This document shows, piece after piece, positions 2,662-45,721 of a stretch of 64,000 nucleotides of DNA (its first letter is position 1; the number at the start of each line of letters is the position of its first letter). This DNA is from Trichoplax adhaerens. Its lineage: Eukaryota > Animalia > Placozoa. Below the pieces are notes generated by a model that was given only the letters and a program-made list of their open reading frames with translations, ran no database searches and was not told the origin of the DNA. The position numbers and the translations under genes were made by a program. The DNA lies in NCBI RefSeq assembly GCF_000150275.1, contig NW_002060947.1:4870267-4934266 (forward strand), read 5' to 3'.

Positions 2662-4042
2662 ATGCACCGTCAAAATTACCCACTCTCAGTGTCTGCTGGA
2701 GGAAGACGATCCCACGGTCCTTTGGTACTTTGTGGAGAAAGATGCCATGTTAGGTACGCAAAAGACCAAAGGAGTCTCGATTTTGATTAGATAATACAGG
2801 AGTTGGCTTGGACACGCAATAATATTTATAGTTAATAGAAATTGCAGTAATCATGCTCTTGCTCAAGATTATATGGTGACTGTACACGAATGTAAAAAAT
2901 AATAGTATTTGATATCCATATATATGATTATATTTACGTAGTATCAACAGCTATTTCAATTGTCGCATATTTTTCATATTATAATTTGACCTAATTTAAT
3001 TGATGTTGACATCATGTAGCTAGAACATTGATTCATAGCGAACAGTCGATTTATTTTAGGTTCACTCAGTTTAGTCTAGAGATCGGATTTTTAGTTACTG
3101 TAGCCATATGAATTAGGAGAAGGAATATCAGTAATAATTTTTTTAATTGTACTGTTGACAAATGCCTTGGTAAGCATTGTGAGCAATGGAATTGCATTTC
3201 TTTACTCATTATAGACTCTGTTTGTAATTATGAGAGTAATCTACATCACCATCTTATGGGAACCTACAGTTTGAAATAAAGTGTTACTGTTTTCTTCATC
3301 GTTTCATTTATTTTAAATACATTTAGCTGAAAAATTGTATGTCTAGCATAAAGTATCTATGTAAGAATTGACTAATTTTCATTTTTATTTCTGTATTGTA
3401 TTTAAAAGGCGTAAAGCCAGCACCCACAGGACAAAATCAGAATTAACAACAACAACTTTAAACCTTTCGCAAAATGTATTAAGATCGACTAGGGGGAAAG
3501 TTAAAGAGGAACAAGATCGCAATGGGGGCTTGAATGACTCAATGCAAAACGAGGAAATTTACGTTAAAGCCTTAGTTAATAAAATCGACGAAATGTTAGC
3601 TGAATCATCACCGAGAGATACATTTAAATCTAATCAGATAAATTTTAATGTTAATGAATCTAATCAGATAGACAACACGATTATAAATTCGTCAGAGTTT
3701 ACAACGACGCCTAGCGTGTGCGGATACAATAAAACAAGCTATACAGACACTGATATTAAGAGTATCAGTAATTTTTCTAATGAAGAATATACTAGCCCTT
3801 ACGAAGGAATACTTACGAAACTGAAATTGAAACAGCTTAAACTAGAAGAATCGAGTCTTTTGAAAAGGAAAGAAATTATTGAGAAAGAAATGAATAGACC
3901 GCCAAAATCTAAATGGTATGAGAGTAAAGGAATTGATTTTCATGTTGAATCTCGGCTAAACAGCTCAAGACTATCAAAAAGCCTTGACAGTGGCACAACA
4001 AATAATTCTACATTGTTGGCTTATTCTCAAGACTTTATTTAG
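2662..4042 (+). CDS. Uncharacterised two-exon protein (~241 aa), divergent from CARS2
   Basis: ATG at 2662; exon 2662-2753 (MHRQNYPLSVSAGGRRSHGPLVLCGERCHV, donor GTACGC) splices in frame (AG|G = Arg) to the acceptor at 3408/3409 into the 224-codon ORF ending TAG at 4042. A coiled-coil-like stretch (LTKLKLKQLKLEESSLLKRKEIIEKEM) is followed by RPPKSKWYESKG. Confidence 0.6.
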
Positions 4043-6541: not shown

Positions 6542-9500
6542 ATGTACCTTTCAATTTGGAAAATTATGGTTATTATTCTGAATGTCTCTCATCAGTTAGT
6601 GGGTAAGTGAAGATAATTTAAAATGCTACATTGAGCGTTACACATGATTGACAAAGATGTTAATTTGAAACAGTAGCACTATTTGAATATCATAGTCATT
6701 CAGTTTCATTTTATGGATCGATCATTTATAGTCAAAACGTTATGAAAAGTTCGATCAATTTTTAGAACTTTTAGTACTTATACCATCTGAAATATTTTAA
6801 TATTATCCTTTTAAATATTGCATATTCAGCAACATCGAATAGCTGCAACCCGTTTTGTTCGTGTACAAAGGAAAAAATTCAGTGCTCAAATTATCAGCTA
6901 CAAACAATTCCTGATATTGACATCGCTAAAGCAAATATTGCATCCATGTAAGTACCTCACTTTAATAGCATGATTTTGTACAGATATGAGAATTCTTAAG
7001 TTATTATAATAGGTGGATAATGTAGAAGTAGGTTGAAACAAGTAATATTATGAAAATATGAGATGATCTTAGTTTACATTAGATTTAGATTAAATTCTCT
7101 ACGATAATCTCTCTTTGATCTTACCAGTGGTAAAGTAATAAATTGATATTGAAAATTTTTTGATTTCATTGGCCGTTATCCTGTCACATTTTTCGTTTAT
7201 CAACTTCAACGCTACATATGTTCTTATCGCATTTGGGATAAATATTCGAAAACTTCACGAAAGATCAGTATTATTTTAGGCTAATTAATAATCATCCCCT
7301 TAAAAGCAACCTTGTTGTATTAAACAGACACACTTGGTAAAGTTCATAGTTTTCTCTTTTTAATTATCCTTCCATAGATGCCACTCAAATTTCATAATCA
7401 ATCACTGACAAATTCATCATTGAAAGATTTATTTTAGCAGATTTTAAAGACTGGGAAATATCTTTCAAAATAATGCATTAATACTGTCTGATAACATTTT
7501 TACTTTAAAATCTCTACCATAGCAAAGTTTATTTCCAGATATAGGTGTACAAAGTCATCACAACGTTATATTTTTCACCGAAAAATATGTATCGCTGCAG
7601 TAAATGAAATATTTTAGATGTCATTAAGAATATATTATTATAACAAATTCTCTCCGAAGGGCTTAAACAACTTAATGAGCACAGATCTTATCAAGTTGAA
7701 TTAAAATTTCATATTTAATTCAAGCCTATCACATTGACTGATGCTGTTGATATTAAGTTATGTAAGCAAAATACTTACAGAAGTGTAACTAGACTAATCT
7801 GTTCATAGTTAATTTACACTGAAAAATGTCGAGTTAATTTGAAAAATTTGACCTTTCTACTTAAGCTACCTTTCGTTTGCTTAAAATTAATCCATGATGA
7901 AATCCATAACTGTTCACGATACTTCAGATTAGAATTTAAATCATTGATCGATGCTATGGCAGCTATACACTACATATTTTAAATCATATCTAAGAGCAAT
8001 AAATGAATGAATCATCAACTAGGATGCTTTAATTCGTAATCATCAATCCTAGATATCGATTTAATTTATTTATTTCATAGCTAAAACGTTTGCATATGGC
8101 GGTTAAGCGAAATTATCCAATAGATATCGCTACGTTTGCAATGGCTCAATTCTTCCATTCTATCTGTATTACTTGTATCTAATACGCACACTATACGCTA
8201 TTTTGGTTAAGATTAAGGAAATTTCCAGAAGCTGCGTTGAAGAATAGTACAGTTAAAGATGTAAATAGCCTTAAGTAAAAGCTATTCACGAAGGAATTCA
8301 TTTCTTATCTAGCCCAAGTTCTACTAAAATCATACCAAGTAATTTTAAGATTCAAGTATCCAAAGCTTATTAGTAGAGGAGTGGGAATGATTATGATATT
8401 GTTAATTGTGTTGTATCAAACTGATGTGAGGTTAGAAGTTTTTATTCTAAGAAAATTTCCGCCAGAGATAATATGAATAACCTTGTAAAAACTTGATATG
8501 GTATTTTATGAGTATCATATGAACCATGGAAAAGAGTCCAATCTAAAATCTAGATTTACTCTTGTATATCCTGTACGAGTAAAAAAATATTTTTAATTCT
8601 TTTTATTAATTATTGTTCACATTTAATGGTCACAATATCCTTCAATCCATTATTCAAGACCTGCCCAAGTTAGCCTTTATGTTTTATTGACATATTTCTA
8701 TGATATACTAAATTCAATGGAAATGTCATATTTAAAGTATTTTAGTTCCATTTTTAAAGATTGATTTAAAAAAAGGTTTCAGGAAGATGTTGAAAATAAT
8801 GGTTAAAAGGATATTTAAGACTACAAAATCTGATATGAATCGCTATCTTTTTACGCTTGTATATCCTTCTTAGTAAAGATAACATTGAGAAGAAATATGT
8901 AAGCACTCATTGTTTTTGCATAGGTTGATTTATTTCGGTATATAGAAGCAAGGCAATTTTATTTATTGTTACATCAATCTAAATCGAAATTTATTGCCAT
9001 CTGTTTCATTGTTACTACTTATAATTTCACAATTATGTGATAACAAGACGAGTTTAAATGAAAAATAATTTTGCAATCAAAGAGAATGACGACATTTCCT
9101 ATTCTTTTGATCACATAACTAATTCGTCTCTGTTCTTATTAATAAGCGCTAATAATAACATAAGAAATAACCACCTACTCAGGGAAGGTGAATTTGCGTT
9201 GTAAAAAGAAGATCAAGATTATCTTAAAAAACTTTTGGGCTAAGAATTACATTTATTATTCCGAGTAGAAATACAGGGGCTAGGCGACAAAAGTAAAATT
9301 TTAACAATTTTATTATTAAAACATTTTGATTCTAATTTATCAATATGTAAATACTAAAATGTTACCATTAGGCTTTAAACTATATTAATTCTAGGTACTC
9401 TGATTATTATTACCTCACGGAATGCGAACACAGTAAATAACTGATACCGTACTAAAAGATTTTCCTTCGATTTTATTTTCAACCTTACTTACAAATATCA

Positions 9501-12500
9501 AATTTATGCGAGCCAGTCTCAAAACTACAACAAAAAAATCATAATGCAATTGAATAGGTGCAAATTGCTATGATGTAAAAGTGAGCTTAGCATTACAACC
9601 TCTTTCAACTACTACAAACACGCTGATGATCCTAATATTTTAGAAAATCGAGGGCTTAAAGCTTACTAGTAAAACTCTCACATTTATCATCAATGTTACT
9701 AAAGCGATTTATAGATTTAAAATAAAACAATTAATATTATTAACCAATATACACTGCCCTAACTGTTACCGGTATATAACTAGTTAGATTGATATTTAAA
9801 ACTTTTTCGATAGTAGCCACAAGCGACAGAAATTTATTTAGAGTTATGCAGCGTCTATATTAATTCATCACAGATTTAATTGCTGTCATATGAGTTGTAT
9901 CTATTTATAACTTTATCAATCACTGAAAATATTTTTGTAAAATCAATCAAGTAGAAATAAATTAGATTACATCTAATGTCATTTAGATTCAAATCCATTT
10001 TCTTTAATTTGTTGCTTGTGTCCACATGTAGGATTATTTACCGCGTTTCTATTGTTCCATTAGCATAAAAATATTCTTGTGATACCTACCGTATAGATAT
10101 CTATTTCATTGAAGCTGTAAAAAGTTTAAAACTATAAGAAGCAGCATACGTACTGTCCTTACCGTAGACGTCTAGAACTTTACGTAAAAGGATGAAAACG
10201 TCATGAAAAATTATAAAATTCGTTCATTAGATAAAATTTAGGCCTGTACCAACAAAATTAAAAAAAGATAAGTTAAGATGAGTGAGACAGTGATGGTATT
10301 TATGCTAATTAATAAATAACCAGTATGAAAATCATTCTGCTAAATTAATGTGTTAAGATTAATTTTCGTAAGCGATGATCAAATGATAACACTGGTGAAA
10401 TAATTAAAACGACTAAGGCGACATCGCGAAGTGACTTTTGTAAATTACTTATCTTATTTTCGATAGTAAACATAATTTGGTATTCATTGATACCACCGTT
10501 ATCTACTAAGTTTTTATAGTTTTATAGTATCATCTATGTAGTAACAATTAATATTTATTCACATTTACTTTAAATCAGTAGAATTTTTTATTAAGGATTG
10601 GCTTAGTTTCATCACAGTGGGGCGTATAATTTACCATAGCCTTCTGACTAGGCGAAGATTGCCAGTATTTATAGTCGTACTGTTGGTAAATGTAAGAGAG
10701 GGAATTTCTGACAGTAGGCTCGAGGTTTTTAACTTACTAGACTTAGTTAGATTTCTTTGTATAAATTTCCATTTGTAATAGGCGATGATTTTGTTTATTT
10801 TAAAATAATTTAAAAAGAGACTTCATCTGGAGATACAGAATGAACATTTTAAATGATTAGACATGCATATAACCTTTTACTTTCCTTGCTTCATAACGAA
10901 ATGCTCAATTATTAAAATTCTTAACACTTACGAGTGTTCAGCTCTAAGTAGAAATAGGCACAGTAATTCTAACTGAGACGATATTGCACTGAGTTGTTAA
11001 TTGGAAATCAAATTAAATTCAGACTTTTCAAATTTAAGTTTCGTAAGCAAGGTATCTGCTATTACTGATACTTGCTTTTTAGGTTTACCACTGGCAATAT
11101 CAAGAATACTGCCCATAAGAATTAGTGATACTGTACTGAAAGAATTTTATCTTTACTAGAAAACTTTTAGTAGGACAACTGATTATGAATCACGTGGCTT
11201 TGTTAGCGACTCTTACATACGTTAAACAAACATTCGTTGTTAACGCAGTGCTATTTGAATTTGAATTTTAAGAAGTGGAAGCGGATACAGTCACTATTAT
11301 AATAAATATTCAAGTAACTCTAGCTGAATTATCAAATTCAAAATTTCCAACCACTTTAAGGTTACAAATCAATATTTGTAATCGCTTTTATTTCCATCCA
11401 ACTTTCCTCATAAAATTTTCTTACTTCATGTTTGTCTCCATCGTTCATCTAGGGGTTTGCCTTTAAATAGCTTTAACAACAATCGATAGCAATTACCAAT
11501 AAATTAATTCCTGATTAGTCATGATGCGTCTTTCATGATATTGATTACATTACTTTACAAACAATTTGTAGGAAATGCAACCAGTACGTAATATTTTCTT
11601 AAACTTTAAATTTTATACTTTAAATTTTATAGATTAATAGTTATCTAATTCTTTTTAATTAACATTAATAAAGGATTAAAAGGAGTTTTTCATAAGGTAA
11701 ATTTTTATGCTAGCTACATCTAAATCCAGATGATATAATTAATATTCACATTTACTATAAGTCGAAAGTTAAAAAATATTTTAAATGACAAAGGCCGAGA
11801 ATTATTTATAATTATTGTGACGTACTGTCGATATGTCTACTCCAGTCAGTAATAATTATGTGTTATGTCATTACCATATTACGCAAATGAAATGATTTAA
11901 TGATACCGCTTACAATGTATAGAAAAAATTCTCGTCTAATATAATTTTGCTTCCTTAATTGAGCTTTCCAATGGCACTAAAGAAGAGAGATTTTTTTTAA
12001 TTTCAATATGGAAAGCACTAGTTCATAACATAACAAGAGCAGATGTGACCCGCGTCTTCATAAAAGACATTACCATTTAAATATCGGATCATACCTAAAA
12101 CATAATTATCGCGTTGCATCGAAATAAAAAATAAGATAGATGAGGTTGATAATATAAAAATATAGCGTTAGAGAAAATACAGTTGCTACTACTTTAATGC
12201 AACTTAATGTTCAGTTATGGCAATATTATAACTTGGTATATTCTAATTTATATCGATACAGTCCGAAGCCATATTATAGAACTAGATAATCTATAGAATT
12301 CAGGTATTATATACCATTAGATACATTTCCACATACTGCAGATTATTCTATTTTAAATTATTGCTTCGCTTGTATATGTCTTGGCCTTCTCTACAATTAT
12401 AGTTCATGGGGATACTATAACTATGCACCCAGAAATAACTATGCCAATTTAAATAGTTAATGATAGAATACGTACTTGTACGCATATGATTCTACTGCCA

Positions 12501-15500
12501 AGTTTCCTTGAATAATTAATTTTTCAACTGAATAGCTGTGAGGAAACGAATATCTTTTGAATGGGAAGTTTACTTTCCATACATCAAATTTTGCCTAAAA
12601 AATCGCCAATTCGGAATTGCTTAAAAATATTTTATAACAAAGATTATGATTACTTACAGTAATGATTCTTCCATCATTTGCTACACAGGATAGTGAATCG
12701 CTTTTAAGACAAGATATTGTTATTACTGTTGTGCTCGAGGCAAATTTCCTCCGTTACAAACATTTTAAAACTTAAATTAAACATTCTCGTATATGTCAAA
12801 TCACAATGACTTTTACTGTTCAAACATCTTCAGCTATACAGAGGGTAGTATACATATAAACAAGTACAATAGTTACTGACATTACCTCTTAAAGTTTGGC
12901 TTTTATGAAGCTAAGAAAATTATCAATACTTTTTCATACGCAACACTAGTTCACTAAAATTCTTGAATAAGTTAAACTTCAATGCTGATAACTCCAAGTG
13001 TATAATTTTCTTTATTGCATCATACATAATACGACGATAAATAGGTCCTAATGAGTAGAGTATAAATAATAAAATAATTTTAGAGGTATGCAAACTTTCT
13101 AGCAGGAAATGTCATGCAACAGAATATAAATCTATTTAGATACGTCCGACTACTAAAATACATAGCTTATATGCTCCATGATATAATAATTCCGTGATAC
13201 GCTATCAAAAATAGTTTCAATTAGCATTTAAATTATAATTATAGACAAAAAGTAGACCGTGGGTCTTTATTTATATACTTCGCATCACGAAATAAATACT
13301 CAGAATTTTTACTAAATGAAGAACTGCGTCGCGAATTACAAGTAGATAATCCGATTTCGAGAATAGATATTATCTATTGATATTGTAAAGCATTAAGTTC
13401 TGAAGGTAATAACAATTCAAATTAAAGCTAATTTTGTTCTCCGTATCCGTACACTCAAGGATTGAAATGATTATAATGTGTTATTATTACACAATATGAA
13501 AGAATAACATATAATTGACGTTGGCATTGACTTAAGAATAATAAACTACAACAAAAATGAGATTTAATACATGAAGTAAATGAATTGCGCAGCGACTTCG
13601 TTCAATGAGCCATTCATAACGTCAAGGATAGTTGGTTTACTGTAAAATTATCTTCTGTTACCCTATAGTAAAGATACCATAAGATTAAAATTAGTTCATC
13701 GTATTTAGTTTACTGCCTTATTAGCGCATATTTCGCTCATAAATAATTTTAATTTACAGAAAACGCAAACAGCATAAGTTTTATTTTATCTCAAAGATAC
13801 TCTGTAGTTTTTATTAATTAATTTATCCGCAAAATCATATTCAAATATCATTACCTATTCTGATAACTGTGAAAAGAGGTATTGGTTTTTAATTTTCTCT
13901 ATCACTGATAATTGTTTCGTAAGTAACAGAGTAAAAACTGTAAATCTTTGATTACCTGAAACCTAATCACTTATTTATTTTAAAACAAACGGAGTCTTAT
14001 TAATATTATCTATTCTAATTATATTCTTAGGTCTATCGTAGATGCAAATCTTATTACATTAAGATCTAATAGCTTTGCTAGCTATGCAAATCTAGTAAAC
14101 CTGTAAGGCTGATTTTCAATTTTAATTTAATGTTAAAAATGTGATTATAGATGATCTTTATAGCTAGTAGATTTATATTTTATCCAAAATATGTTTTAAA
14201 AATTTAATGATATTTGTTGCAGTACTATAGTCGATAGTAAAATACGAAGTTTGCAAGATTACGGATTTTCAAATTTAAGCCATCTTATTAATTTGTAAGT
14301 CATTGTATTAATCATCTCATAAGGTAATCATTCACGTTATAGCGTATTTACACATTTTCAATTAAATATAGATAAAGTTATGGTTAGTTGTGCTAAGTCA
14401 CTATATAACTGCCAAATAATATAATTTATATGACTACACCCCAGGGATCTTACCTATAATGAATTGGATAGCTTGAAATCCCCGGAAACATTCTACGGAT
14501 TAGAAAATTTGCGAACATTGTAAGCTGTCACTCATTCACATCTTTTATTGATGTCGGCATAATTTATTTGGCTTGTTACTAAAGGCAGGTATTTCTTGAT
14601 GTACATTTATAATTAGGAAAATTGTATTTAATCGAATTCACTCCGTGGATTATGGCGTCTTTGCAGCTCTGAAAAGTTTAACATCTTTGTAAGTAGCATT
14701 AGAACTATTTAAAAATAATTATATCTATTTGTAGAAACTACTAATACCTATAATACCATCAGAATCTGCCTTGTAAAAGGGTTACTTGCAGCTGATTAAT
14801 GCCTTCAGAAGGCGCTTACTGAATTTGATTGAACAGTCCTCAATGATGATTAGTTGAAAGACTGTTTATTCGCGAGACTGTTAGCGAATTATAACGATAT
14901 TAATGCTAAAGCTGAGTCAATTCTTGATTTTAAGAAAGTTAGAGGAATAATTCTGAATAGACTTCAACATAGTTATCGCTTGCAAATACTCTAATTGATT
15001 TAAGAAACATTTTAGGATCATTTTAGTACGTTGTACAAACTGAAGTTACCTTAGGTGTAAAGCTCGGTTTATGTGTGGTAATTCAGGTATCGATAATCAT
15101 AATATACGGTAAGAAATTTAAATAGTTTTGGCCTTTATCAACAAACTTTCTCCAACGATTTCACCTTACTTCTGCATATTCATTTCTGCACATGATATTT
15201 CAAAGTATAGCAGTCTAGATATTAATGACTAAAGTAGAAAAAATTTCTTCATTAGCCGAGATATTAATTGGGTATATTTCCGAAGATAATTTAAGCATAT
15301 AAGTGTTAGAATATAACAGCAGGAATAAAACTACTATGCGAATTGCGGTTGATAGTACTCGATTTGATAAAATATCGCAGGAGCATGTCAGGCAATCATA
15401 TTGCAAGCCTAGATCGGATACATTTCCACGGGTTAAGCAATCTAGCCGATTTGTAAGTGATAAATTTTGTTAGCTCTGTTATTAATATAAAGAAAAACCT

Positions 15501-18500
15501 AATAGGAAGTTCTATATCATCTTAGCACATTTTCTATTTTGTAGGCGCCTATCTGGTAATCAGTTAACAACAATTCCATCAAGCGCTTTTATTAATCTAC
15601 CGAATCTGGAGCTAATGTAAGATTTTCTCTTTTACTTAACTAATCATTTAAATCAGTTTTAGTTTTTCTAATATAAACCAGTAAACAATTCGCTTGTAAG
15701 AATATCTAATAATCATGTCATAATAATTTTTCCAATATTACGATAATTTGCTATAACACAGATTAATTGTTATGATCTGTCTGCTAATTCATAACCTGTA
15801 CTTGTTTCTATTATTTAGTTTTTTAGCTTTTAACTTTATCGAAAATCTGAACGAAAAAACGTTTGATAATCTTGGGAAACTTCAATTCTTGTTAGTCTAG
15901 AATTTGACTTTGCAGTTTATTTTGCAATATTTGGCTGAGGTAGATCCAGTCTTAAGATTAATTAGCTCTCGTAAATATTTTTCATCTTCGACAGGCAATT
16001 GGGAGCCAACCGAATAAAAAGATGCAATCATAAAGTATTTTCGACTTTGCGAACATTACAGATATTGTAAGCTAGCAATAATTAAAATCAAAATTTGTAA
16101 TTGAAAAAGATGCGATAAATACCATGGTTCATTTTTCAGGGATTTATCCGTTAATCAATTATCCTTTGTTGAAGATTATTGCTTTAAAGACATGACTTCT
16201 TTATATGGAGTGTATGTATTTAACGTTTTGATAATACCTACCATCTTAAGTTTTACCGGTAGTAGTAATAACAATAATTGTTCATATTGATAATGAACTA
16301 AATTTTAATGTCTTCGCATACAATCAATGTAATGTATGCATTATTCATGAATCGATGTTATCGAGCAAAATGCTTATATCTCGAACAAAACTTCCTACTA
16401 GTCAAATTACATATTATAACAAATGTAGGCTTACAATAATAACTATTGTGCCTATCTTTTTAAAAAGCCAAAATATCCAATCAGAGCAATCTATACAATG
16501 CTGTATGTTATGTCCTTTAAATTCTAAATAAGAAGATAAAATTTCAAGCTTCCGAAGTTGTAATTACTGTCATGAAATGGATTAAGTGGTTTTTAAAGTT
16601 AAATGACGGATTGAAGCAATTGCAACTGAAACAATTATCACTCACTATAATAATTTCAGATCGTTAGCTAAAAATCAACTTAAAACAATTGGCTCCAATT
16701 CATTTTATGGCTTGAGAAATTTAGTAGAAATGTAAGAGCTAATTATATCAATTAAGAAGAAAATTTAAGTTGTATTGAAACGTCATAAAGTGTCCAATGT
16801 TTTCTACAGGTTTCTAGATGCCAATCAAATCCAAGATATTCACCCTAATGCTTTCAGACACCTTAATCGAATCAAATTAATGTAATATACTTTATGTTTA
16901 ATGAGCAGTATCTTTATTGCATTTATACATCAACAAACCTATTTAAGTATGCAACTTTGACAGAATGCTACAGGATAACCGACTGCAGACGATCGAGGAC
17001 AATTACTTTTCCAATTTGAGTACATTGAAAGAACTGTAAGGGATTAAGATGAAACTACTATTACTACCAAATATATATATATACCTTTACAAAAAAGTAC
17101 AAGCTAGTGAACTAATGATATCTCTTACCATTTAGTTACTTACAAAGAAACAGGATTGAAACGATAAGCGATCAATCATTTACGGGATTATACAGCCTAA
17201 ATATAATGTATTATGAAAAAATTTTTCCTTTATTAATATATAACGTTTTACGGCATTTAAATTTTTAAAGAGCTTTAAATATTAGTTCTTATACTTATCA
17301 AAGTATTATAAATATCATAAAGCATTCTTGAATTATCCTTCAGAAATATTTCCAGCAATCCAATACATCGGATTGCTAGCCAAGCTTTAAATGATTTACA
17401 TAATTTAACGATACTGTAAGTTAAAGCACTTATTACACTTTTAGGCTATTAAAATAAATACAAAATAGGATATCTTTATTACTAGTACTAGAAATTCCTT
17501 AGACTATTTTATAAACAGTAAAACTTAAAAGTTAACTTAAAATTCTATTAACTATTAACCAAGCATAATTTAATTGATTAATTGATACAATGGAGCAAAA
17601 TTATATATTTTATCGTCTTTATTTGTCAGTCTTCAAGTTATAGTAAATCTGCTAATCTTTAATGAATAACTACACAGACATAGTTTAGAATTATATCATA
17701 TTGTAGTTGATTAGAATTGTTGTAGTTGCAACGTATAACAATTATATTACTGTCCTAACATATGGCTCTAATATAACTTTAGGAGACTCAAAGCGATTTC
17801 CTTAGATGCCATTCCATATGGTTTATTCCGGTCTACATTCAATTTAGCAACTTTGTTAGTTGTTTTCCAACTTATTTAAATTAAATTGCGTCACTTTAGT
17901 AGTATCATCCTAGGAAAAATTCAATTGTTAGCTTATAATTGATATATGATTTACTTACACAGCTGTTAGATCTATAGTAACCACACTTTATTGATAGGGA
18001 CTTGACAAACAGCGGCATAAAACGCCTTGGAAGCAACAATTTCAACAATTTATTTCATTTACAGTCTATGTAAGATTTTGATGACCTTATAATATTATAC
18101 AGATAATACTATAATAAATATTGTATACTAAGTATGAATAATATAAAGTGTAAGTAATTTAAGTATATCCTCCTGAAAAAAATTCGGTATACGTATTTTA
18201 TCCTATAGGGATTTATCCTCAAATGGAATAGGTTATATACCCCCATACGCTTTTAATGTTTCAGATCCAAGCCATGTCAATCGATTGTAAGTATCTAAGC
18301 AGTAATTTTACGCAGAATAGAAGCATCAATTGGTATTATGGTTTGAAATGCTAAACGATGCGGTCCAAAAATTCCCCGATTAAAATGATATTTCTTCTAT
18401 GTTTCAGCTTTTCTGTTCGCTCTTCTGAGTTACTAATTTAGCTAGCCTTATATTGATAGTAAAGCGATGTCAGCTGCTATATCACCCTCTCATTTTATTT

Positions 18501-21500
18501 AGTGACCTGAAATATTTTACCTTATTCTAAGATAAAATACTTCGATAACAAAAGTTTTACTAGATTTATTCTGAATTATATAATCAAATTTGTACTAATA
18601 TGCATCAATTATTGATACTTAGGCAATTACAAAACAATTTTATCTCCGTTCTTGATCGACATGCTTTTGATGGGTTATATTCACTACAAACTTTGTAAGT
18701 AAAGTTTATATATAGTGAATACGTCCATACCTGTCATTACATCTGCTTAAATTTTATAGTTTGTTCCTCTTGAACATGATTTATTTACATGAGTATTCAA
18801 GCGAGAGTTTACAATTCCGGAAATTGTCGAAGCATTAAAATTATAGCACATCAGATATCCAATTTATCTAATCAATTTAAACATGATATCAAAGATATAA
18901 TTTCTATAGTCTATATTTAATAATAGGAATAGAAGCTTAGATCGTTAGAAACGACAGTAGAAGAAATAACAAAAATCCTCCATACGGCTGTCAAAATTTG
19001 TAGTTTATTAGTGTCACAAAACAGCTTTGCAACAAGATAACGCAATATACGATCAATAAGTCAATTCCTTGAACCTCGTATCAAGGAACGATATCTGTAC
19101 TATCACGAACACTTTTGTTCTACTAGCAGACTACACTAAGACTTTAACGCCTCGTATTTTACGTTAAACACTAAGTTGGAGAAATTATCTTTATTTCACG
19201 ATATACTGCATTTATATACTACTCCTCAATAGTTCATGAGTCATAGTTAATACAATTAATATTGGAATCATTTACTGAATTAGGTATTAATTTTAGCTAC
19301 TGCTCCCTTAATGCAGACAACAGTATTTACGAATATTGACATATAATGACTAATACAGAATAGTCAGATTACGATATGTCCTATCACGGAACATTTCCAT
19401 GATAATTTACTGTCTACCATAAGTATATTACAATCACAATGATTCGAACTGTAAGTAGATGATTTGCATTCCCTATTATAACTATTAATTTCAGTATGTG
19501 TATAAGTATCACTGTCATAAAAAGTCAGTGCTATATTAAAACACAGTATATCCAAATTAGAAGTTAACTAAATAAGGATAGTCTAACAGAATTATCCTAA
19601 CATAGTTATTTCTACTGTAATACAGTATTTAACACTGTAACAATTAGTAATACAAAAATACAGTTTTAGTCAAAGATATTTCCGAATATATAAATATGTT
19701 GGATTATAATTTAGCAGTAGTATTCCTGTTCTTTAAGCAATAGGATTGTTCAAAGAAATATAATCAATATTTATCAGTTAAGGAAGATTATATGTATATA
19801 GGAAATTTTTCTATCGTAATTTTAAATGCTTGGTTACGGATATGTGATGTTAAAAACCTGATAATGATTTACAAATTTGCATAAGAAATGAAATGTAGCT
19901 TTATGTTTGAAGTTAATTAGCATACAACAAGCGATATTTGTTTTTATGACTAATGAATTTCATATCATGTAATATCAGATGTTTAGAAAGAAATAAGCTC
20001 CTGCGAATTCTTGATGGAACGTTTTCATCACTGACTTCACTAAAAGTCTGTAAGTGCATAATACAAGATCNNNNNNNNNNNNNNNNNNNNNNNNNNNNNN
20101 NNNNNNNNNNNNNNNNNNNNGTTGTTAATAATTGTGAAATATAACTGTATTTGAAAATGTTTTATCTCTCGGTATTTTATTTTATGTTAAGTTGGTTGGA
20201 TGGCAATAAGATACAATCTCTTTATGAAATTAATTTGCGAAATTTTCCATCGTTTCAATATCTGTAAGTCATATTGTAGTACATCGTAATGGAACTTGTA
20301 ATACCATTTACCGCAACTGAAATTATTTTAGCTCCTGTCTTATTAGTAGCATATAAATACAGTCAAAGTTGATTAAATGCATGAAATTAGCTACAAAATC
20401 AGTTATCGAACGAGACCAAAATGTTTAAGAAATCTAGACAGTTTACTGCTACGGTAACCTACAGAGTGCAGACCTAAAATAACTCTTTAAAGTTGTTATT
20501 TTAGTAAAGTATTCTGTCACATTTTCCTAAATTACAGTGGTTTATCAAGAAACTCATTATCAGATGCAGAAAACACACACAATAGTTGGGTTTTAACCTC
20601 AAGTCGAATCCTTTACGTGTAAGTTAATTATATTTGCAAATTTCTTGTATAACAAGCCAATCACAATGATTGGCGAATCTAATAATTATCGGTGTTCTTA
20701 ACACGGATTTCATTTGATGTTTAACCCCATTCTTTAATATAGTGATTTGTCAAATAATGCTTTAAACCAAATGCTATATTTAGTTGGAATCGAACACGAT
20801 CAAATTAAGATGTTGTAAGTATCGTACTCGTATTTTTCACTAATTGAAATTACAGTATATTTTGATTATGTCGATAAAGACTCTTACGAAATTGGCAATT
20901 ACAGCCTTAAAAAACGATTTAAAAGAACTATCGTACTGTATTTAATTAATATTGTGAAATTTAAGTCAGTTCATTAAGATAGGCACTTTAATTTATCATG
21001 GTTACATATAGAAATGTAATTAGACAGATTTTTAATTATTCATATAAAGTATATGCCTTGTAGTAATTCATAGTTGCTGATATTAAGCAGATAAATTATC
21101 ACTACTACTAAATGTAGTGAAGTCTTTAATAATCAATATATGTTTATGGCAATTTACCGCTTTTTTTCGTATAGCCTCCTATTTCCAACTTAAATTTCTA
21201 TAATTTATTAATAATTAAGTACGATTTAATTTTATATTTACACAGAAATTTGTCTGGGAATTACCTTACTTCTGAGTCGCAAATCGACTTGCATCGATAT
21301 AAATCGCTGGTTCAGCTGTAAGATTTTACGATCACTATCAAATTTATAATTACGACAAAGGACTTCATGAATGATCTAACTAAAATAAATTTTTAATGCA
21401 TACTATAGAGATTTATCTAATAACAGAATTAGTGAGATGACAGTTTCTTGGTTTGGTGGTTTACCAACTTTCTTGAGGCCATTAGCAAGCTTGTACGCTA

Positions 21501-24500
21501 GCTAAATCACACTAGTATAGCTGACGTGTAGAACTTCAATCAATAATAGTCCTTTGACTCTTTTTTAACAACGTAAAATTAAAATGCTGTTAATATTACG
21601 ATTTCCATAGATACATCAATAACAATCATTTGGAACATATTCATACTTCGGCCTTTCAAGCATTGCAAAATCTTTCAACTTTAATGCTGGACTTTAATTC
21701 TTTAAGCGATTTAACATTCCTGTCCAAATTGAACAATTTACACACACTGTATGATTTTATATCATATACTTTCGTAGCATTAAATTAAAAATAATCATCT
21801 CTGAAGTTAATCACAATAAAATTAAGTTCTAGCTATTCTAATATAAATTCTTTGTTCATTTTAAACAAAGTTATCTCTAATTCAACAGTTCTATTCGCAA
21901 TAATTATCTATCAAGTATAAAATTGGAATCATCCTGGAATTTTTCTAAATTGAAAATACTGTTAGTATACAACCTTTGTTTACCTTACAAGAATGTTACG
22001 ATTACAATGGTAAAAAGTCTAAGGTAGCATATTCTATTCATAAATAATGTGTTTAGGAATTTAGCTAACAATTACATCGACACTCTTTACAATGGCACAT
22101 TTGCACCTGCTACAAACCTAACGATTTTGTAAGTTTCAACTGTATGGCGAAGTTTTTATAACAAATACGATAGTAATTTACTTATCATCCGAGGCTATTC
22201 TATGTTTCAATAAATTACGTAGTAATAAATCGGTAATATTTTGGATACGATTCTAGACATTGTTACAGGTGAAAGTTATTGGAATTGCGTATTAATATAA
22301 ATAATTACGTCGATATTAATATTAGAACCCTATCAGGAAATCTTATTCACTCCATTTCTGAATTCGCTTTCAAAGATCTAACAAAATTAACGGAATTGTA
22401 AGTTGATCTGATAGTTCTATGTCTTAATTTAAAGTTATTGCTTGTTTGCGAGATCTTAAAGTAATGAAAATTATAGCTAAAGGCAATAATTTCGATTTTC
22501 CCGAAAGTAAATTCTACGTGATTTTTTAGGGCTAGCTGGTATAATCTGTATTGCATAATTGTTACCGTAGTGATTAACTTGTTTAATCACTATAACTAAT
22601 CAATTTATGAAATTCAAACATTGTCCAATTTGATTTACTTTAGTAATATTTAAAAAATATTTGATGTAATATTACTCATTGCCTATAATTAATGCAGCAA
22701 TCTATTTGTATATGCTATGCTGTCTTGCTACTTGATTGAATACAATTGCTCTTAAAATTTGAAAGGAAAAGTTATAAATCTGTTGATGCAAACTATTCTG
22801 TGATTATCTTCGAATAGAAGCTCTTTCATGCTTTGATCTTCAATCTCTACTTTAGATATTTAGCAAACAATCGACTCAAAAATATCGAAAGGTTCCTACG
22901 AAATGATTTTAGATGTTTGAATACGCTGTAAGTTGATTTAGTTAGGACTGATGGTCACATATAATTGTTTCGGATCGATTAGTTATTGTTGAAGAAAGTT
23001 TAGTTACTTTAATAGTGTTCTATGTCTTTAACTTCGTTTTGTTTAAAAGCTAACTATTATTCAGATTTCAGTTTAGTTGCTTTCATTTCTTTAATTGTCG
23101 AATTTGAATGTAGCTGTTTGATTATAATTATGTTATTAATATTCTGCATACAGCAACTTTAGTACTTCATACCTATCGGTTAGTCTTTATTTTCTACATT
23201 CAAATTCCGATTTTAGATTAAGCAATAGTAATCAATTTTAATATTACTTTTACTATTACTTGTCTTGGAGGTTATAAGATGTATAATTTTGAAACTATTA
23301 TTATTAGTGATGTTTCTTCAAATCAGATCCAGTTTATTTCGTCAGAGGCTATGCATAATTTGCCGCAACTTCAAAGATTGTAAGTAAAGTCTTAGATAAT
23401 CAAACTACTAAATAGATCATATTAATAAGGAATTCTGGTTTAATGTTACTCTTACAACACAATTTGTTACTAGCGAGTAACGTAACACTTAATATCTTAC
23501 CTATAATCTCCCGGTTTACAGATTATTACCTAGTTGTTTTAAGTGTCTTTAAAAATTTACTGTAACATTGAGCAGATATACGCTTACGTCTACTTCGAAT
23601 TAATATTCAGATTCAAGCAAGTCACATTTTAAGTAAAATACAGATATAAAATTGTTATGTATACTATATGTGAACTTAAGGTATTACTCGTAATTGATAT
23701 CAGTATTCAAGCATTTTATCAATGAGATATTAAACTGAAAGCTATTACTTTAATCCTAGAATTCTAGATCATAATCTATTGACTGCAATACCATCTAGCG
23801 CTATTGGAAAGCTGATCAGTCTGGCACTAATGTAGGTGTTAATATCATAGCATAATAGATTTCATATAATATCGTTATATTGAAATATACATGTCTGTGT
23901 GATACGGCTGCTTATAGTATAGTAATGTTTATAATATTTGTAACGAATTATTTACAGATCTATCAATAATAATCGGTTGAACAATCTAACATGTAAAGGC
24001 TTTTCCAAGAGTATAGTTGAAATGTAAGTCATTCCACTTATTATTAATTAATTCTTAATTTAGGCTTCAATTAGTGAGAAAAACCAAAATTACGAAGATC
24101 TTTGATCTTCAATGTAAAGAATGTAACTTTAATATTAATTTAAGGTCTTAGATTCATATTGTAACTTTGGAGATTTTTAAAAGTAACTTTACAGTAACTT
24201 AGAGATACTTACCTTAGAAGATATAGATTACTATAGAAATGCAGTTTATTTAGAGTAGATATCAGAATAAGATTTTATACTTTTAGGAAGCATATTTTGA
24301 TTTGAAACTGAAATGGACCTGCTAGACTATTTACAGTATATAAATATATGTACGTTTGAATACTTCAGTAATTTTATAATTTTCGGCATCATTTCACTAG
24401 TACAGCATATCCGTATATTCGTATGAGATACGTTTGATAAATATAGCCACCAATAATACACATAATGCTAGTATCCCAGAAATTTTATAGAATATTTTCC

Positions 24501-27500
24501 ACAAATTCTTTATACTACATCCATTAGTTCTTTATATGTAGTATAATCTAAACTGCTAAACGTTACTACTATGTAATTACTTATATACCACTAGTATATC
24601 TAACAATTAAAGTTTGGGATTATTTATAATTCTATCCACATTTTTGATCTACTAATTGTAAAGGCAAGTTAGCCATAACCAGATTGAAAGTATTGATGCA
24701 AGCTGTAATGAAACATTCAAAAGATTAAGGAAAATGTATGAACACAATTACTTACTAATTATATTCTATCCTTATCACTTAAAATTTGTGGAAATTTGAA
24801 AAAGTGATAGTTTTGTATTAAATCGGATGCATCAAGATTTATTTAACTGATCTTTCAATTTGCCGTGGTTTTAGAGACGTTAGTTTTAATAAAATGGAAG
24901 CTCGTGGTATTAACATATATGATCAAATACTAAGCAAACTGGCGGCATACCCTAGAGTTGTGTGAGTAGTTTCCATTAAATCCAAGTAAATTATTTAAGT
25001 CGTGCTACGTGACTATCCTGGTGTATGCATTCGTTACATGGTAAATTTTTTAATCTTTATAGAATTAAGTAGTAGAACGTAAAATTTGTATTTACATCGG
25101 CGTGCGTAAGCTCGATGTGAGCATACTTCCCTTGCCCTTCCTCTTTTACAGTTTCACTAACAGAATATTGTTACAGTGTTATACACGGTAATATCGAGAT
25201 TATAGTAGAAACATCTATGTTAGGATGATTTTGTTGATTTACTCTTATATGAAGAGTCTCTAATTTAGATATGTGATATTTAAATATAGCATTAACTTTT
25301 ATGGTGATATATACAGCCTACTGAAATTAGCAGTTTAATTAGGGAATCGAGAATAATCTTCTTACAATTCAAATCACTGTGATTTGTAATTTACTTATGG
25401 TACATTATAGATTATCGTAGAAATGTTCCGTGATAGGACATATTGTAATCTGACAATTTTGTATTAATCATTCGATGCGTATGTTCGTAAATACTATTGT
25501 TTCATTATGTTGCAGTAGATAAAATTAGCTTTTGATTCATTATCAGGTTTCAACGTTAACATTACTCACTAGGATGTCTTTGCTATTGTAAAAGAGTATA
25601 CAAATGCGATAAATCGTATAATAAAATTAGCTCTTATGATTGGTGTTTAACGTAAGATACGAGGCGTCTAAGTCTTTTTGAGTCTACTAGTATAGGAAAA
25701 GTGTTCATGAAAGAGTACATACTGCTCCCTGATACATGGTTCAATGAATCGACTGATTAATCGTGCATTATGTTATCTTGTTGCAAAGCTGTTTTGTAAC
25801 AAATATCCATAATTATTTTCTAAATAAAGGTTACTTTTTTTCTTAGAAATATTGCTGGAAATGACCTTCATGACATTCCAGTCGATTATTTCAGATTGAA
25901 TTTATTTCTGCGATCCATGTGAGGATAGCTCGTTACTTAATTGACGGATATTTACAATTCATAATCTTACTTGTGTCATCTTTCACATAATGTTATACTT
26001 CATAAAGCAGTTGTAACTTATTAAATCTATAATTTCTTTTCGCGTAATCTTGCACCGATTCATCTCTTATTCCGAAATTTTAGTGATATCAGCTACAATC
26101 CATTAACCTTAGAGAAAATAGTCCAAATCGTTCAAGCATTATTCATCTCGCAAGACTGTCTCGAAAATTCGCAATTATTCCAATGCGGATACTCTATGTA
26201 ATGTTTCGTTATTATTACATTCATAGCAGAATTTTACAGATCAAAAATATTTTAAATCAACCTTGTCTTTCAACTGTAGCAAACTTGCCGGCATCAATCT
26301 TACAATGATTCCAAATTCCATTTTTTCACACATTAATGGCTACATTTCAGAATTGTAAGTATGTCTTCAAGCCCTATATTTGTACGTATTTCACTGACCA
26401 GTTGAAACTATAATGATTAGTGCGATAATTTTCTGGGTAGTATCATTTTTGCAATTAAAATCGAAGAAAGTTCTTTACAACATTTTACGTGATAGAGAAT
26501 ATACCGCAGCTGGTTCGATATGTTATTTGATGTATTATAAACAATCCAGATAGTGAGATTATTAAAATAAAATTTAAAATGCTACAATTTACAAGTCATA
26601 AAAGTATATCATCGTGATCTCCAATAGAATGGATTTATGGCTTTATGTTAGTTTTAAGATTAGAGTAATCTTCGTAAATGCAATTAGGTAAATTAATTAT
26701 GGCTACATCGATGAAATTAAGACAAAAAATTATTGTTAAACTCTATGAATAGATTATTTGTGATAATTTAATTGATGGATAGAAATATTATTATCTACAT
26801 TAGGAACCTTAACGACAATAATTTAACCTCTATGGATGGATCGGATATCTTCCAAAACTATGATGATAACCTAAAAGAACTGTAATAATAAGTTTGAAAT
26901 AGATTAAAGTTCTTATCCTCTAATAGTATTTCATGAGAACTTTTAAAATTTTTTAATTTTGCAAGACAACTAGCTAACAATAATATCAAGAATTTTACGA
27001 ATTATAAGCGTGTGGAATTTCGAAGTTTGCATACTTTGTAAGATTTTCTAAAATGAATAGGTTTAAATTGTAACTAAAGCTACAAAAATACAACTTTTGC
27101 AATGCTTGTTTATTTATTAATAATTTAATCCATTTAATTGATAAGCATTGATCTAAAATATGCATAAGGTGTCCTATATACGCGTATATTTTATTTTATT
27201 ATATTACTTCACTAATTTTATTAACTCATTTGAAATGTTAATTAACTATTATTTGATCTTTTCATAGGAATATTTCCGATAATTTGATAACAACCGATCT
27301 GTTAATGGAAGTTTTATCAATTTGCCCAAATTTAAACCAACTGTAAATCTATTAAGATATATCTTTAAAATTTAAATAATACGCTCAGAGTGATACCTTA
27401 TTTGAAAGATTCTTATAAAAACCGCAAATATTGACTTTTAACTGATTTCGTTATGTTGATAATATTCTAGTTACGTCAGTAATAATAATATTAGAACGTT

Positions 27501-29818
27501 AAAGGATCGATTTTTTGAACAAGTACCACATTTGCAATTATTGTAAGTCATAAATTAAAACTTGTTATGCTTGATTTGCTTCAATTATTATGGCAAAAGT
27601 TTGTTAATATTTGCAATAACGTACAGTAGCTGGCATCCTCATTGCTATTTTATTAAATTAATGATTAATTTTTATAGATCTATCGCAAACAATCCCTTAC
27701 TAAATATTTCATCGGAATCGTTTTTTGGTCCAGCTCAACTCAGTAGCATGTAAGGCAAAGTACTCACTTTGGCTATATTTCCTTTAAATTTAGAAAATTT
27801 AACCAATGATATATTATTTCGAAAGATTTACGATAATTCAAAAGGCAACAGCTTAAGATTAGAAGGCAGCAAAAGTAAAATTTTTCGGCTGAGTACCCTA
27901 TAATATAAACTGACTGACATATGTGTTATAGTAATCAATACCACAGTTCGATATTCGTATTATTACTACAAACGAATGATACCGCTTTAAGGTTGCATTT
28001 ATTCTTAGACAGAATATGATTACAGTATCATGAATTTAAAGACCACAAATATGAGTAAAGTATACTCGTATACTGTTATTCTGAAGGCATATTCGATCTT
28101 CTAAAAGAATTACATAATTTTATTTATAACGGAAATAATATTACATCATAGATTGAGGTAGACCATTAAAAGTCTCGTCTTACGTGATGATAATAAATGA
28201 ACTTATGAATTTTTAATTGCTAGATTTTGTAATATTGATATCTATTTAAGAGCAGTGAATTGATGATTGGCTTTATATCATTTATGCATTAATTGTTTAG
28301 TACCGAACTTCCTTTCACTATCCTTGACTGTCAATAGCCCGAATTTTCTTAGTTTAACTGCATATTATTATTATGTGGCATAAATCAGCATAGATTTCTT
28401 ATAATATTGTTTTCATTGGGTACTTTAATACGAGCCAATCCGATATGCTCTGTCGGCTTAAAGCTAACTAATTCTAAGGGTGTTAATTGAGTACAAATAC
28501 GGTACTATTTCTGCAATTTCTTTATTAAGTACGCCTAAATGATATTTTCTTCGTACCAACTTTCAATTTCTTTGTAGATTTACAGATTTCACTGATCGAT
28601 AACAATTTATTATTCACATTTTATGCTAATAGATTTTCTACCAGGGATTATCTTTGCTGCATTGTACCTGCGAAAGTTACACATTGTATACCATTACCTG
28701 ATCAAGATTCTCTATCGACATGCAATAATATCTTACCTCATTTTACTTTGCAATTATTCGTTTGGATTATTGGTATTGCAGCATTAATTGGTAGTATTAT
28801 GGTCCTGATACGTAATCATTGCTTTTATAGCAATCGCAGTAACCGAAAACGTGTTCCCGTTTTGTTAATATCAAATCTAGCGGTAGTCGATTTACTTATG
28901 GCATTATACTTATTAATAATCGCTATTGCTGATCAGTATTACCGGGGATTTTATGGCTCACGAACAGAAAAGTGGTTAACTAGTATTCCGTGCTACTTTG
29001 CTTGTTTCTTAGTATCATTATCAAGTTTAATGTCAGTTTACACCATCGGTTTCATTTGTCTTGATCGTTATATTCATATTGGTGTGCCATTCGCTCAAAA
29101 ATTTTTAACAATGCAAACAGCTCAAATAGCTTTAGGTATCGGCTGGCTATTTAGCATTATATTTGTCATTATTCCAGTTGCTAACAGTGTGGGCAAGTAC
29201 GGTGATCAACGCATTTATAAATACAGCAGTGTGTGTGTACCAAGTAATGTAGAGAATTTAAACTATCGGAAATGGTTAGCAACATTCACTTTGTTAACCT
29301 TAATCATATGGATTATGACTGCTACCATTTATATTTTGTTCTTGATATCATTGAAAACTTCCAGAAAGTTATCTAATCGGAATATTGATCGAGGAGAGAA
29401 ACGTTTAACATTGCGAATTTTATTAATTGTAGTAACAAATTTTTCATCATGGATGCCATATTATATCTTAATAGTTCAATTTCTTTGGACCGGATGGTTT
29501 AATATTTATGCATTACAATTTATTGCTATCTTTGCATTACCTCTTAACGCGGCACTGAACCCATACCTATATACATTTACTAATCCAGCTGTGACATACT
29601 GCTATCCTTGGCTACAATCTAAATTTAGGCGATTTCTACGACCATTAGTTACCGCTATAGGCCATATTTTTTCACGTAATCATAAATCTAAAATGTCATC
29701 AAGCACAGAAGTTAAATTATCGTCAAAGGTAATTTTTCAATCTTCCGGCATCTATCAAACCAATCAGATAGAAACTACCACTACTTTTACGACTGCAACT
29801 GTAGCTAATGATTTATAG
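6542..29818 (+). CDS. Giant leucine-rich-repeat GPCR (LGR; RXFP/GRL101-like hinge, no LDLa seen), ~44 exons, ~1490 aa
   Basis: Signal-peptide exon 6542-6602 (MYLSIWKIMVIILNVSHQLV) and LRRNT exon 6830-6947 (CNPFCSCTKEKIQC). Then 41 GT-AG phase-2 LRR exons start at 14031, 14445, 14617, 15381, 15545, 15819, 15995, 16140, 16660, 16810, 16964, 17136, 17344, 17783, 17998, 18209, 18623, 19979, 20192, 20538, 20743, 21246, 21409, 21611, 21889, 22057, 22326, 22856, 23308, 23760, 23958, 24664, 24875, 25847, 26084, 26280, 26804, 26966, 27268, 27471 and 27678; 29 are exactly 72 nt (e.g. RLSGNQLTTIPSSAFINLPNLELM). The terminal exon 28633-29818 encodes the hinge YLCCIVPAKVTHCIPLPDQDSLSTCNNIL and a class-A 7TM (SNLAVVD, LDRY, SWMP, NPYLY). 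Confidence 0.85.
19012..19642 (+). mobile_element. ~630-bp TG...CA element, copy A (solo-LTR-like or non-autonomous transposon), in an LGR intron
   Basis: Begins TGTCACA and ends TGTAACA. Flanked by the 5-bp direct repeat ATTAG (19007-19011 / 19643-19647). Closely similar along its full length to 31419-32052. Confidence 0.88.
20071..20120. other. Assembly gap (50 N)
   Basis: Run of n characters inside an LGR intron; true size unknown. Confidence 0.99.
25169..25801 (-). mobile_element. ~630-bp TG...CA element, copy D (more diverged, inverted), in an LGR intron
   Basis: Perfect 7-bp terminal inverted repeat TGTTACA...TGTAACA. 5-bp TSD AATAT (25164-25168 / 25802-25806). The reverse complement shares blocks with copy A (ttatcttgttgcaaagctg, atacgaggcgt, ttccgtgataggacatat). 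Confidence 0.82.
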
Positions 29819-44795: not shown

Positions 44796-45721
44796 GTTGA
44801 GATGAAAGTAATTTGATGCGATTTTAATGTTTTTTTTGGGCTTGGTTACTCGATTACTGCACAATGATTAGTAGATTGAGTTATTGAAATATCAATCTAT
44901 ATTAGAGTACAGCAGGTAATAATGAATTACCGAGATATTGAGAATTGATTTAGTTGTAAAAAAGATTACGATAAAATAGTATTCTTTAAAATTACCTGTC
45001 TAGCGAAATTTTTAACGATGATTATAGTTCGACATTACATCTTGTCGTGAAAAGAATGTACTTTTTTGTTTCATGAAGAAATATCAAACTTGGACGCTAT
45101 ATTCTTTAATTAAGCAGCGCGGTTATGTGAAAAATTAAAATTTTGACGGGTAAAAATTTTCCATTGCCTATAAATTTTATCTTTATAAGATTAAGATGAT
45201 TGAATAATAGGCAATTAGCTAATTAATAAGGCAGTGATTGACCACGACGACGCTGAATTTTCACGATAAAATAAAAAAAGGTAAGGTTTAAACCAAGTCG
45301 GGATTACCCAGAATATATAACCGCTTGTTATTAACTCAATAATGGGAAATGGCTCAAATTAATTGGTTCTAGTGTTGTAGAGAAGTGAATTCTCTATTTT
45401 TTTTTTCGACGTCTCGATATAAAAATAATTCTTTAATTCACTCCTTAACATTAATAGATATGCGAGTTTATTGATATAGACGATTGACCATCACCATATG
45501 CACAGTTATTTGAATACGGAAATCAAACATAATCATAGGCAGATTTCATGATTAAGATTGAAGTAACGCCGGTGGATAAGTAGAAGAATCGTAAAAGACA
45601 AAGTAAGAAAATAAGTAACAAGAATTAGCAAGTGTTTAATAGAAATCGATTGCAGGATTACTTTCTATTTGATCATAAAATAAAGTTGTTAATAATACAT
45701 ATAGCCAGTTTAAGCTATCGA

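Follow-up and report, generated by a model that had tools for sequence, protein, structure and literature searches.

A 64,000-nucleotide (nt) stretch of the genome of Trichoplax adhaerens (contig NW_002060947.1, positions 4,870,267 to 4,934,266 of the forward strand; hereafter the window) raises the question of how much of a receptor gene can stay out of sight when almost all of its coding sequence is cut into very short exons. Between positions 6542 and 29818 the list of open reading frames (ORFs) holds a single long frame, 28748-29818, and an earlier reading of the letters (the original prediction) had rightly remarked that this list betrays essentially the last exon alone of what it took to be one giant leucine-rich repeat (LRR)-containing G protein-coupled receptor (LGR). 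We find that the region is very probably one expressed T. adhaerens gene for an orphan, placozoan-specific LGR, and that its transcript is spliced across an assembly gap that hides five LRR exons. Placozoans are animals without neurons.

The exon chain and the receptor exon

The plus strand carries, in order, an exon for a putative signal peptide, an exon for a putative LRRNT cap, a 7.1-kb intron, 42 visible LRR exons and one exon for a seven-transmembrane (7TM) domain (Table 1), which supports the single co-oriented gene originally proposed, with signal peptide, LRRNT, long LRR array, hinge and 7TM. The repeat unit is a tandem LRR of 24 residues, with almost one repeat per 72-nt phase-2 exon. 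Nearly all LRR exons are 72 nt long and all lengths except that of 19979-20049 are multiples of three; both ends lie in phase 2, one leading base completing a codon and two trailing bases opening the next, and the boundaries read AG/GTAAG, with GTAAG following most exons. The GC content of the region is about 28%.

Exons of this size are easily missed. A strict LxxLxLxxNxL expression gave no enrichment, and tblastn with Trichoplax paralogues against the window returned the 7TM exon only, exons of 24 amino acids (aa) being too short for detection. A longer motif scan and a hidden Markov model (HMM) built from its matches were used instead, followed by a search of all AG...GT segments open in phase 2 and by splice-site scoring. 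From 14031 to 27749 this independent scan identified 41 LRR exons, as many as had been claimed before, and comparison with the protein of Trichoplax sp. H2 (see below) added exon 26084-26197, which had escaped the first scan through a length limit. The chain is not a product of chance, since strong matches to the LRR-HMM are confined to the plus strand between 14 and 28 kb of the window and strong splice donors are concentrated there too. When the exons are joined locally, both halves of the spliced frame, on either side of the gap, are free of stops.

Pfam 7tm_1 is recognised in the last exon (28633-29818) with an E-value of 2.2e-20 (73.7 bits, cut-off 30.5), and its translation keeps the DRY, SWMP (W-x-P) and NPYLY (NPxxY) motifs intact. 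Its ten best sequence matches in the PDB are all of LGR type (E 7e-25 to 3e-21): nine are LHCGR, RXFP1, FSHR or TSHR, and the tenth is an unnamed class-A receptor with the same hinge box. LRR ectodomain and 7TM lie on one polypeptide, as the LRR exons are linked by RNA and the gene models of the Joint Genome Institute (JGI) and of H2 both join 27749 to 28633.

The same exon is 100% identical to TRIADDRAFT_56600 (JGI, T. adhaerens), a stub of 462 aa that consists of three real exons and a doubtful first one, and to residues 1180-1573 of RDD42337.1 (P0162), a 1573-aa "G-protein coupled receptor GRL101-like protein" from Trichoplax sp. H2. The latter was found in the same 90% cluster (P0155); a word search with the paralogue P0007 did not return it. 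It is the orthologue: 40 of the 41 LRR exons of the first scan and the whole 7TM exon match it at 100% or with one mismatch and in the same order. Exons upstream of the gap each agree in 22-24 of their 23-25 residues, in order, and those downstream are 100% identical, all except 25847-25918. A Pfam scan, one of the checks that had been proposed, gave LRR_8 at 9e-160 on the H2 protein. The original prediction had counted on there being no described orthologue with the same number of LRRs, an expectation that this protein, with its 1573 aa and a comparable number, overturns.

The H2 gene model differs from ours in four respects. It opens with an artificial MK in place of the signal-peptide and LRRNT exons; exon 25847-25918 is left out; the doubtful 26628-26687 is counted in; and the five LRRs concealed by the gap in the H1 assembly are present. 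For the two disputed exons a related placozoan contig (L007), the 7TM of which is 77% identical, is informative: the last ten LRR exons follow there in the same order, and the introns are not alignable. Exon 25847-25918 has a copy there, identical in 22 of 23 residues and flanked by strong splice sites, whereas the 20 residues of 26628-26687 have no counterpart in the orthologous intron of 141 nt, in which there would be no room for them; because of this difference we retain 25847-25918 in the model and regard 26628-26687 as doubtful. A short JGI model is also seen for another receptor: TRIADDRAFT_53796 (P0008, 952 aa) is 99% identical to, and much shorter than, its H2 orthologue P0007 (1270 aa, still partial). 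Truncation of LGR ectodomains seems to be systematic in the H1 gene set.

Table 1. Features of the predicted receptor gene, in window coordinates.
Feature	Positions	Strand	Remarks
Exon 1: Met and hydrophobic, signal-peptide-like stretch (MYLSIWKIMVIILNVSHQLV)	6542..6602	+	phase-1 end at GTAAGT donor
Exon 2: LRRNT cysteine cap (..SCNPFCSCTKEKIQCSNYQLQTIPD..)	6830..6947	+	CNPFCSC..C; phase-2 end
7.1-kb intron, no LDLa or other Cys-rich exon	6948..14030	+	predicted junction 6947>14031
LRR array part 1, 19 exons	14031..20049	+	14031-14102, 14223-14294, 14445-14519, 14617-14688, 15381-15452, 15545-15616, 15819-15890, 15995-16066, 16140-16211, 16660-16731, 16810-16881, 16964-17035, 17136-17207, 17344-17415, 17783-17854, 17998-18069, 18209-18286, 18623-18694, 19979-20049
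Intron as assembled, with N gap 20071-20120	20050..20191	+	real length at least about 1.6 kb; predicted to hold five 72-nt LRR exons and the base missing from the preceding exon
LRR array part 2, 23 exons	20192..27749	+	20192-20263, 20538-20618, 20743-20814, 21246-21317, 21409-21492, 21611-21748 (two LRRs), 21889-21960, 22057-22128, 22326-22397, 22856-22927, 23308-23379, 23760-23831, 23958-24023, 24664-24735, 24875-24961, 25847-25918, 26084-26197, 26280-26354, 26804-26881, 26966-27037, 27268-27342, 27471-27542, 27678-27749
Doubtful 60-nt exon (MDLWLYVSFKIRVIFVNAI), not LRR-like	26628..26687	+	in JGI and H2 models; splice scores 0.5 and 0.7 (weak)
Last exon: short Cys hinge (DYLCCIVPAKVTHCIPLPDQDSLSTC), rhodopsin-type 7TM, C-terminal tail, stop codon	28633..29818	+	DRY, SWMP, NPYLY

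The transcript and the assembly gap

A run of N in the middle of the array makes it necessary to ask whether the two halves belong together. Contigs of four sequencing runs were aligned to positions 17120-23100, three of the runs (X1, X10 and X12) being spliced RNA and one (X2) DNA-like. The RNA contigs contain eleven GT..AG joints between consecutive exons, two of them upstream (18286>18623 and 18694>19979) and nine running from 20049>20192 to 22128>22326. The joint 20049>20192, which spans the N run, is thus among those confirmed by RNA, and the gap is crossed by single contigs in both X1 (2461 letters) and X12 (885 letters); the length arithmetic of an X10 contig covers exons 17136 to 18286. 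Words of the last exon are present in the RNA runs to 53-95%.

Exons from before and after the gap lie in single RNA contigs and are therefore parts of one transcript, not of two genes; the break in transcripts near 20071 that had been considered as a possible sign of two genes is not what the contigs show. That an N-terminal LRR protein ends before the gap and a separate, shorter LGR begins after it is scarcely credible: a gap of uncertain size does separate the halves, and the JGI model spans the last three exons only, but these contigs join exons on both of its sides and the H2 gene model is continuous. Unspliced sequence was also met in these runs. The intron 17208-17343 is retained in an X10 contig, X12 extends into the same intron by 32 nt or more, and an X10 contig continues past the donor at 18286 (window 18287-18544). 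Such contigs are unspliced or partly spliced pre-mRNA from a random-primed library.

How much the gap conceals can be estimated in three ways. Residues 461-581 of the H2 protein (121 aa, five LRRs) fall between the exons that end at 20049 and start at 20192, and no 8-residue word of them was found in the window. Pieces placed on the X12 contig, a loose end among them, account for 63+72+81+72+71+72+78+15 = 524 of its 885 letters and leave 361 unplaced, which is the number predicted from the H2 protein, namely one missing base and 5x72. In the DNA of X2, the match ends exactly at 20049 with 39 letters left over and resumes at 20123 on a contig with 1561 further unplaced letters. Because of the extra residues in H2, the 361 letters of X12 and the 1561 letters of X2, the gap must be far longer than the 50 bases written at 20071-20120, and on this sequence evidence it hides five LRR exons. 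Together with the 42 visible exons and exons 1 and 2, the hidden letters bring the predicted full protein to about 1635 aa and about 48 LRRs, against which the earlier figures of about 42 repeats and about 1490 aa were an undercount. Searches of the same genome (105.6 Mb assembly, 1414 contigs) with the flanks of the gap brought up no second copy or haplotig closing it, and a search with the whole H2 protein gave only 7TM exons among the best 30 candidates scored.

The exon before the gap deserves attention of its own, as the assembly gives it only 71 nt, with one base missing, and the defect lies 21 bases from the end of the contig. If 20049 is joined literally to 20192, the frame shifts and meets a stop 43 codons later, at residue 561. 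We read the 71 nt as an assembly error at the contig end, because of the H2 residues, the letter count in X12 and the end of the X2 match at 20049. Taken at face value, the same exon would make the locus a frameshifted pseudogene or the source of a truncated secreted LRR protein only, and the RNA joint is indeed placed at 20049>20192, the exon before it counting 71 letters. This is very improbable, however, in view of the position of the defect so close to the contig end, the sequence between being marked "not known" at that very joint, an X12 remainder of exactly the expected size, an X2 match that stops exactly there, an H2 orthologue that reads through with five extra LRRs, and a downstream frame that is all open and 100% conserved. 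An alternative form of exon 19979 that is 75 nt long and uses an in-frame donor (GTGCAT) at 20054 was rejected in view of the RNA joint at 20049 and of the H2 residues ..SLKVL.. at this place.

The intron in front of this exon (18695-19978, 1284 nt) contains a sharply bounded interspersed repeat, about 630 bp long, at window positions 19012-19642. Hundreds of contigs match it at 90-99% identity, ending at 19010-19012 and 19642-19646; its summed depth exceeds 200,000 in X2 compared with about 90 in the flanks, and in the RNA runs it is raised 10- to 250-fold.

The uniform phase of the LRR exons invites a further reading, in which frame-symmetric one-LRR exons are skipped in combination and one gene yields many receptor isoforms. 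Any subset of these exons, multiples of three in phase 2, would stay in frame, and two exons differ between the gene models. All eleven joints seen nevertheless connect neighbours, and no skipping joint is listed, with the limit that contigs drop rare variants and that nine joints are not shown; phase-2 one-repeat exons are, moreover, the ordinary structure of LGR genes at large, such as those of the glycoprotein-hormone receptors. We regard combinatorial skipping as quite improbable.

The beginning of the gene

Judged by frame, motif and gene architecture, exons 1 and 2 (6542-6947) are very probably the 5' end of this gene. The joins 6602>6830 (phase 1) and 6947>14031 (phase 2) are in frame and free of stops, the acceptor at 6830 being compatible with the phase-1 donor of exon 1. 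Exon 2 has a strong donor, after 6947, and a weak acceptor; exon 1 is missing from both the H2 and the JGI models. Exon 2 shows the motif C-x-x-x-C-x-C...C and matches Pfam LRRNT with E=1.5e-4 and 21.7 bits, which is under the gathering cut-off of 25.8. Paralogues in the same genome offer a test: five of the seven weak genome matches to the LRRNT exon are each followed, 16-31 kb downstream and in the same orientation, by a paralogous 7TM exon, a pairing expected for about 0.8% of random matches, and the corresponding distance here is 21.7 kb.

An LDLa exon in the long intron, which had been named as a find that would refute the original prediction, was sought and did not appear: in six frames, 6948-14030 has no LDLa-motif or Cys-rich frame except one chance fragment on the minus strand, and the H2 protein is without a match to PF00057. 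The intron scan and the Pfam result thus agree with the earlier remark that no LDLa exon is visible. The same interval contains only two strong donors and nothing above 8 bits against the LRR-HMM.

It is conceivable that the transcript starts elsewhere, for example within the 7-kb interval, and that 6542-6947 is a relic or belongs to another transcript. The H2 annotation opens at 14031, the joint 6947>14031 lies outside the stretch confirmed by RNA, the LRRNT match stays under the gathering score and exon 2 has a weak acceptor. We nevertheless hold such a start to be unlikely: exons 1 and 2 join in frame and without stops to what follows, a receptor ectodomain requires a signal peptide, an LRRNT-type exon precedes five paralogous 7TM exons by 16-31 kb on the same strand, where about 0.8% would be expected per random match, and the interval holds no other candidate exon and almost no strong donor.

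With a gene that runs from 6542 to 29818 as the preferred reading, the points that speak against it can be taken together. Junction mapping from exon 6542 to exon 28633, as once proposed, has been achieved for the eleven joints within 17120-23100; 6602>6830, 6947>14031 and 27749>28633 fall outside the set confirmed by RNA, the last being taken from the JGI and H2 models. The 5' exons rest on frame, motif and paralogue architecture, as the H2 model begins at 14031 with its artificial MK, and the letters hidden in the gap come from length arithmetic and the H2 protein. The membership of exons 25847-25918 and 26628-26687 is not fixed by frame, every LRR exon being frame-neutral. Finally, the receptor is an orphan as to its ligand, its G-protein coupling and its cell type.

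Receptor family and comparison with known systems

Re-annotation of the T. adhaerens genome yielded 46 LGRs, of which two are of type A, none of type B, three of type C and 41 placozoan-specific, and the Trichoplax-specific receptors have unusually many LRRs, the example that is drawn, Tadh-LGR-15, having 34 (Hauser, Koch and Grimmelikhuijzen 2022, PMC9545775). The gene described here shares the features of that clade: many close paralogues, about 48 LRRs, a short hinge with four cysteines that is unlike that of the placozoan types A and C, and no LDLa. In the genome, around 50 paralogous 7TM domains are each encoded intact in a single exon (36-52% identity, E<1e-57). By its LRR number, hinge and paralogues, the gene is most probably a member of the placozoan-specific clade; it is given no Tadh-LGR number here, as Table S2 of that study gives TriadITZ identifiers only. 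The "unclassified LGR architecture" of the original prediction thus gives way to a published family (PMC9545775) with a near-identical H2 protein in GenBank.

The same scaffold carries further LGR 7TM exons: on its minus strand, C1410:4845454-4846401, which precedes the window by 24 kb, and 4821435-4822382, which precedes it by 48 kb, and on its plus strand C1410:5213563-5214516. Other contigs (C1380, C1394 and C1413) carry tight clusters of six to nine such exons, which points to tandem expansion of the family.

By analogy with other LGRs, an extracellular protein or surface ligand would bind the LRR solenoid, the short hinge, with its disulfide bonds, would relay the signal to a 7TM domain with intact DRY, W-x-P and NPxxY motifs, and the 7TM would hand it on to a G protein. 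A bolder suggestion, which we consider improbable, is that about 48 LRRs make the ectodomain longer than a flat, hormone-binding horseshoe would allow, and that it serves as a pattern-recognition or cell-contact sensor coupled to a G protein, with isoforms derived from skipping; if that were true, placozoans would have built an innate-recognition repertoire on about 50 such GPCR (G protein-coupled receptor) genes.

The kind of receptor, its expansion in placozoans, the unusual number of LRRs and the near-identical H2 protein were already known; the additions made here are the exons at the 5' end, those concealed by the gap, and a number of repeats greater than in the published example. As the family and the H2 protein are already public, the gain is a better annotation and not a new class. 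That gain has consequences all the same: the standard annotation is a 462-aa fragment and the assembly hides five exons, so the size of placozoan LGR ectodomains is underestimated in counts and classifications drawn from that annotation. Few LRR ectodomains predicted for the GPCRs encountered in this comparison are as long as the present one, with its about 48 repeats.

Two other candidate genes lie in the window. On the minus strand, 33440-44864 holds three very long frames (1584, 463 and 1404 aa) with cadherin-type repeats (..DxNDNxPxF..), a signal peptide, one transmembrane segment and a long tail; this is, by its predicted domains, a giant FAT/protocadherin-like gene adjoining the LGR. Upstream, the plus strand has a hydrophobic segment (3104-3211) and, after it, a Ser/Asn/Lys-rich frame of 224 aa (3368-4042). 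No LRR signal was found at 3104-4042, a stretch that could represent the 3' end of a gene for a membrane protein lying upstream.

Among known systems, the type C LGRs (RXFP1/2 and Lymnaea GRL101) are the ones from which the GenBank name "GRL101-like" derives, by similarity. The likeness lies in an LGR-type 7TM (RXFP1, PDB 7tmw, E=6e-23) and a short hinge, whereas the LDLa module and the 9-10 or so LRRs that characterise type C are both absent here, where about 48 LRRs are predicted. The hinge itself measures about 30 residues from the last LRR to the first transmembrane segment and contains four cysteines (DYLCCIVPAKVTHCIPLPDQDSLSTC). Its pattern, CC ... C-x-P-x-P-D ... C, with the two boxes 9 residues apart, aligns to the LHCGR box CAPEPDAFNPC; RXFP1 has a serine at the second cysteine, which is kept here. 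From its predicted residues, then, the hinge is short like that of type C yet carries the cysteine box of types A and B, and it is not specifically RXFP-like. Of the RXFP/GRL101-like hinge originally described, the shortness stands and the resemblance of the cysteine box does not.

Types A and B (LHCGR, FSHR, TSHR and LGR4-6) are alike in other ways. Among solved structures LHCGR comes nearest (7fig, E=7e-25), the C-x-P-x-P-D...C box ahead of the first transmembrane segment is common to both, and in genes of these types, as in the present one, phase-2 exons with one LRR each precede one large exon for the 7TM. The receptors themselves differ in having 7-9 or 14-18 repeats (by another figure 16-18 for the upper group) and in a hinge loop that is long and type-specific, neither of which is found here. 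The LRR count is thus more than double that of any canonical LGR type (about 48 compared with 7-9, 9-10 or 14-18), as had been claimed on a lower estimate.

Long LRR ectodomains on GPCRs are also predicted in other animals. LRR_8 and 7tm_1 are the only domains of a 1457-aa protein from Amphiura filiformis (P0174) and of unnamed ENA entries with 1200-1450 aa, the ectodomains having about 30-40 repeats; these predictions are uncharacterised and their LRR identity is only 25-31%, so we state the likeness at the level of the shared LGR 7TM only. The Trichoplax-specific clade belongs to the same species, stands outside types A, B and C, and combines a short, family-specific cysteine hinge with a high number of LRRs, the difference being that the about 48 LRRs predicted here exceed the 34 of the published example.

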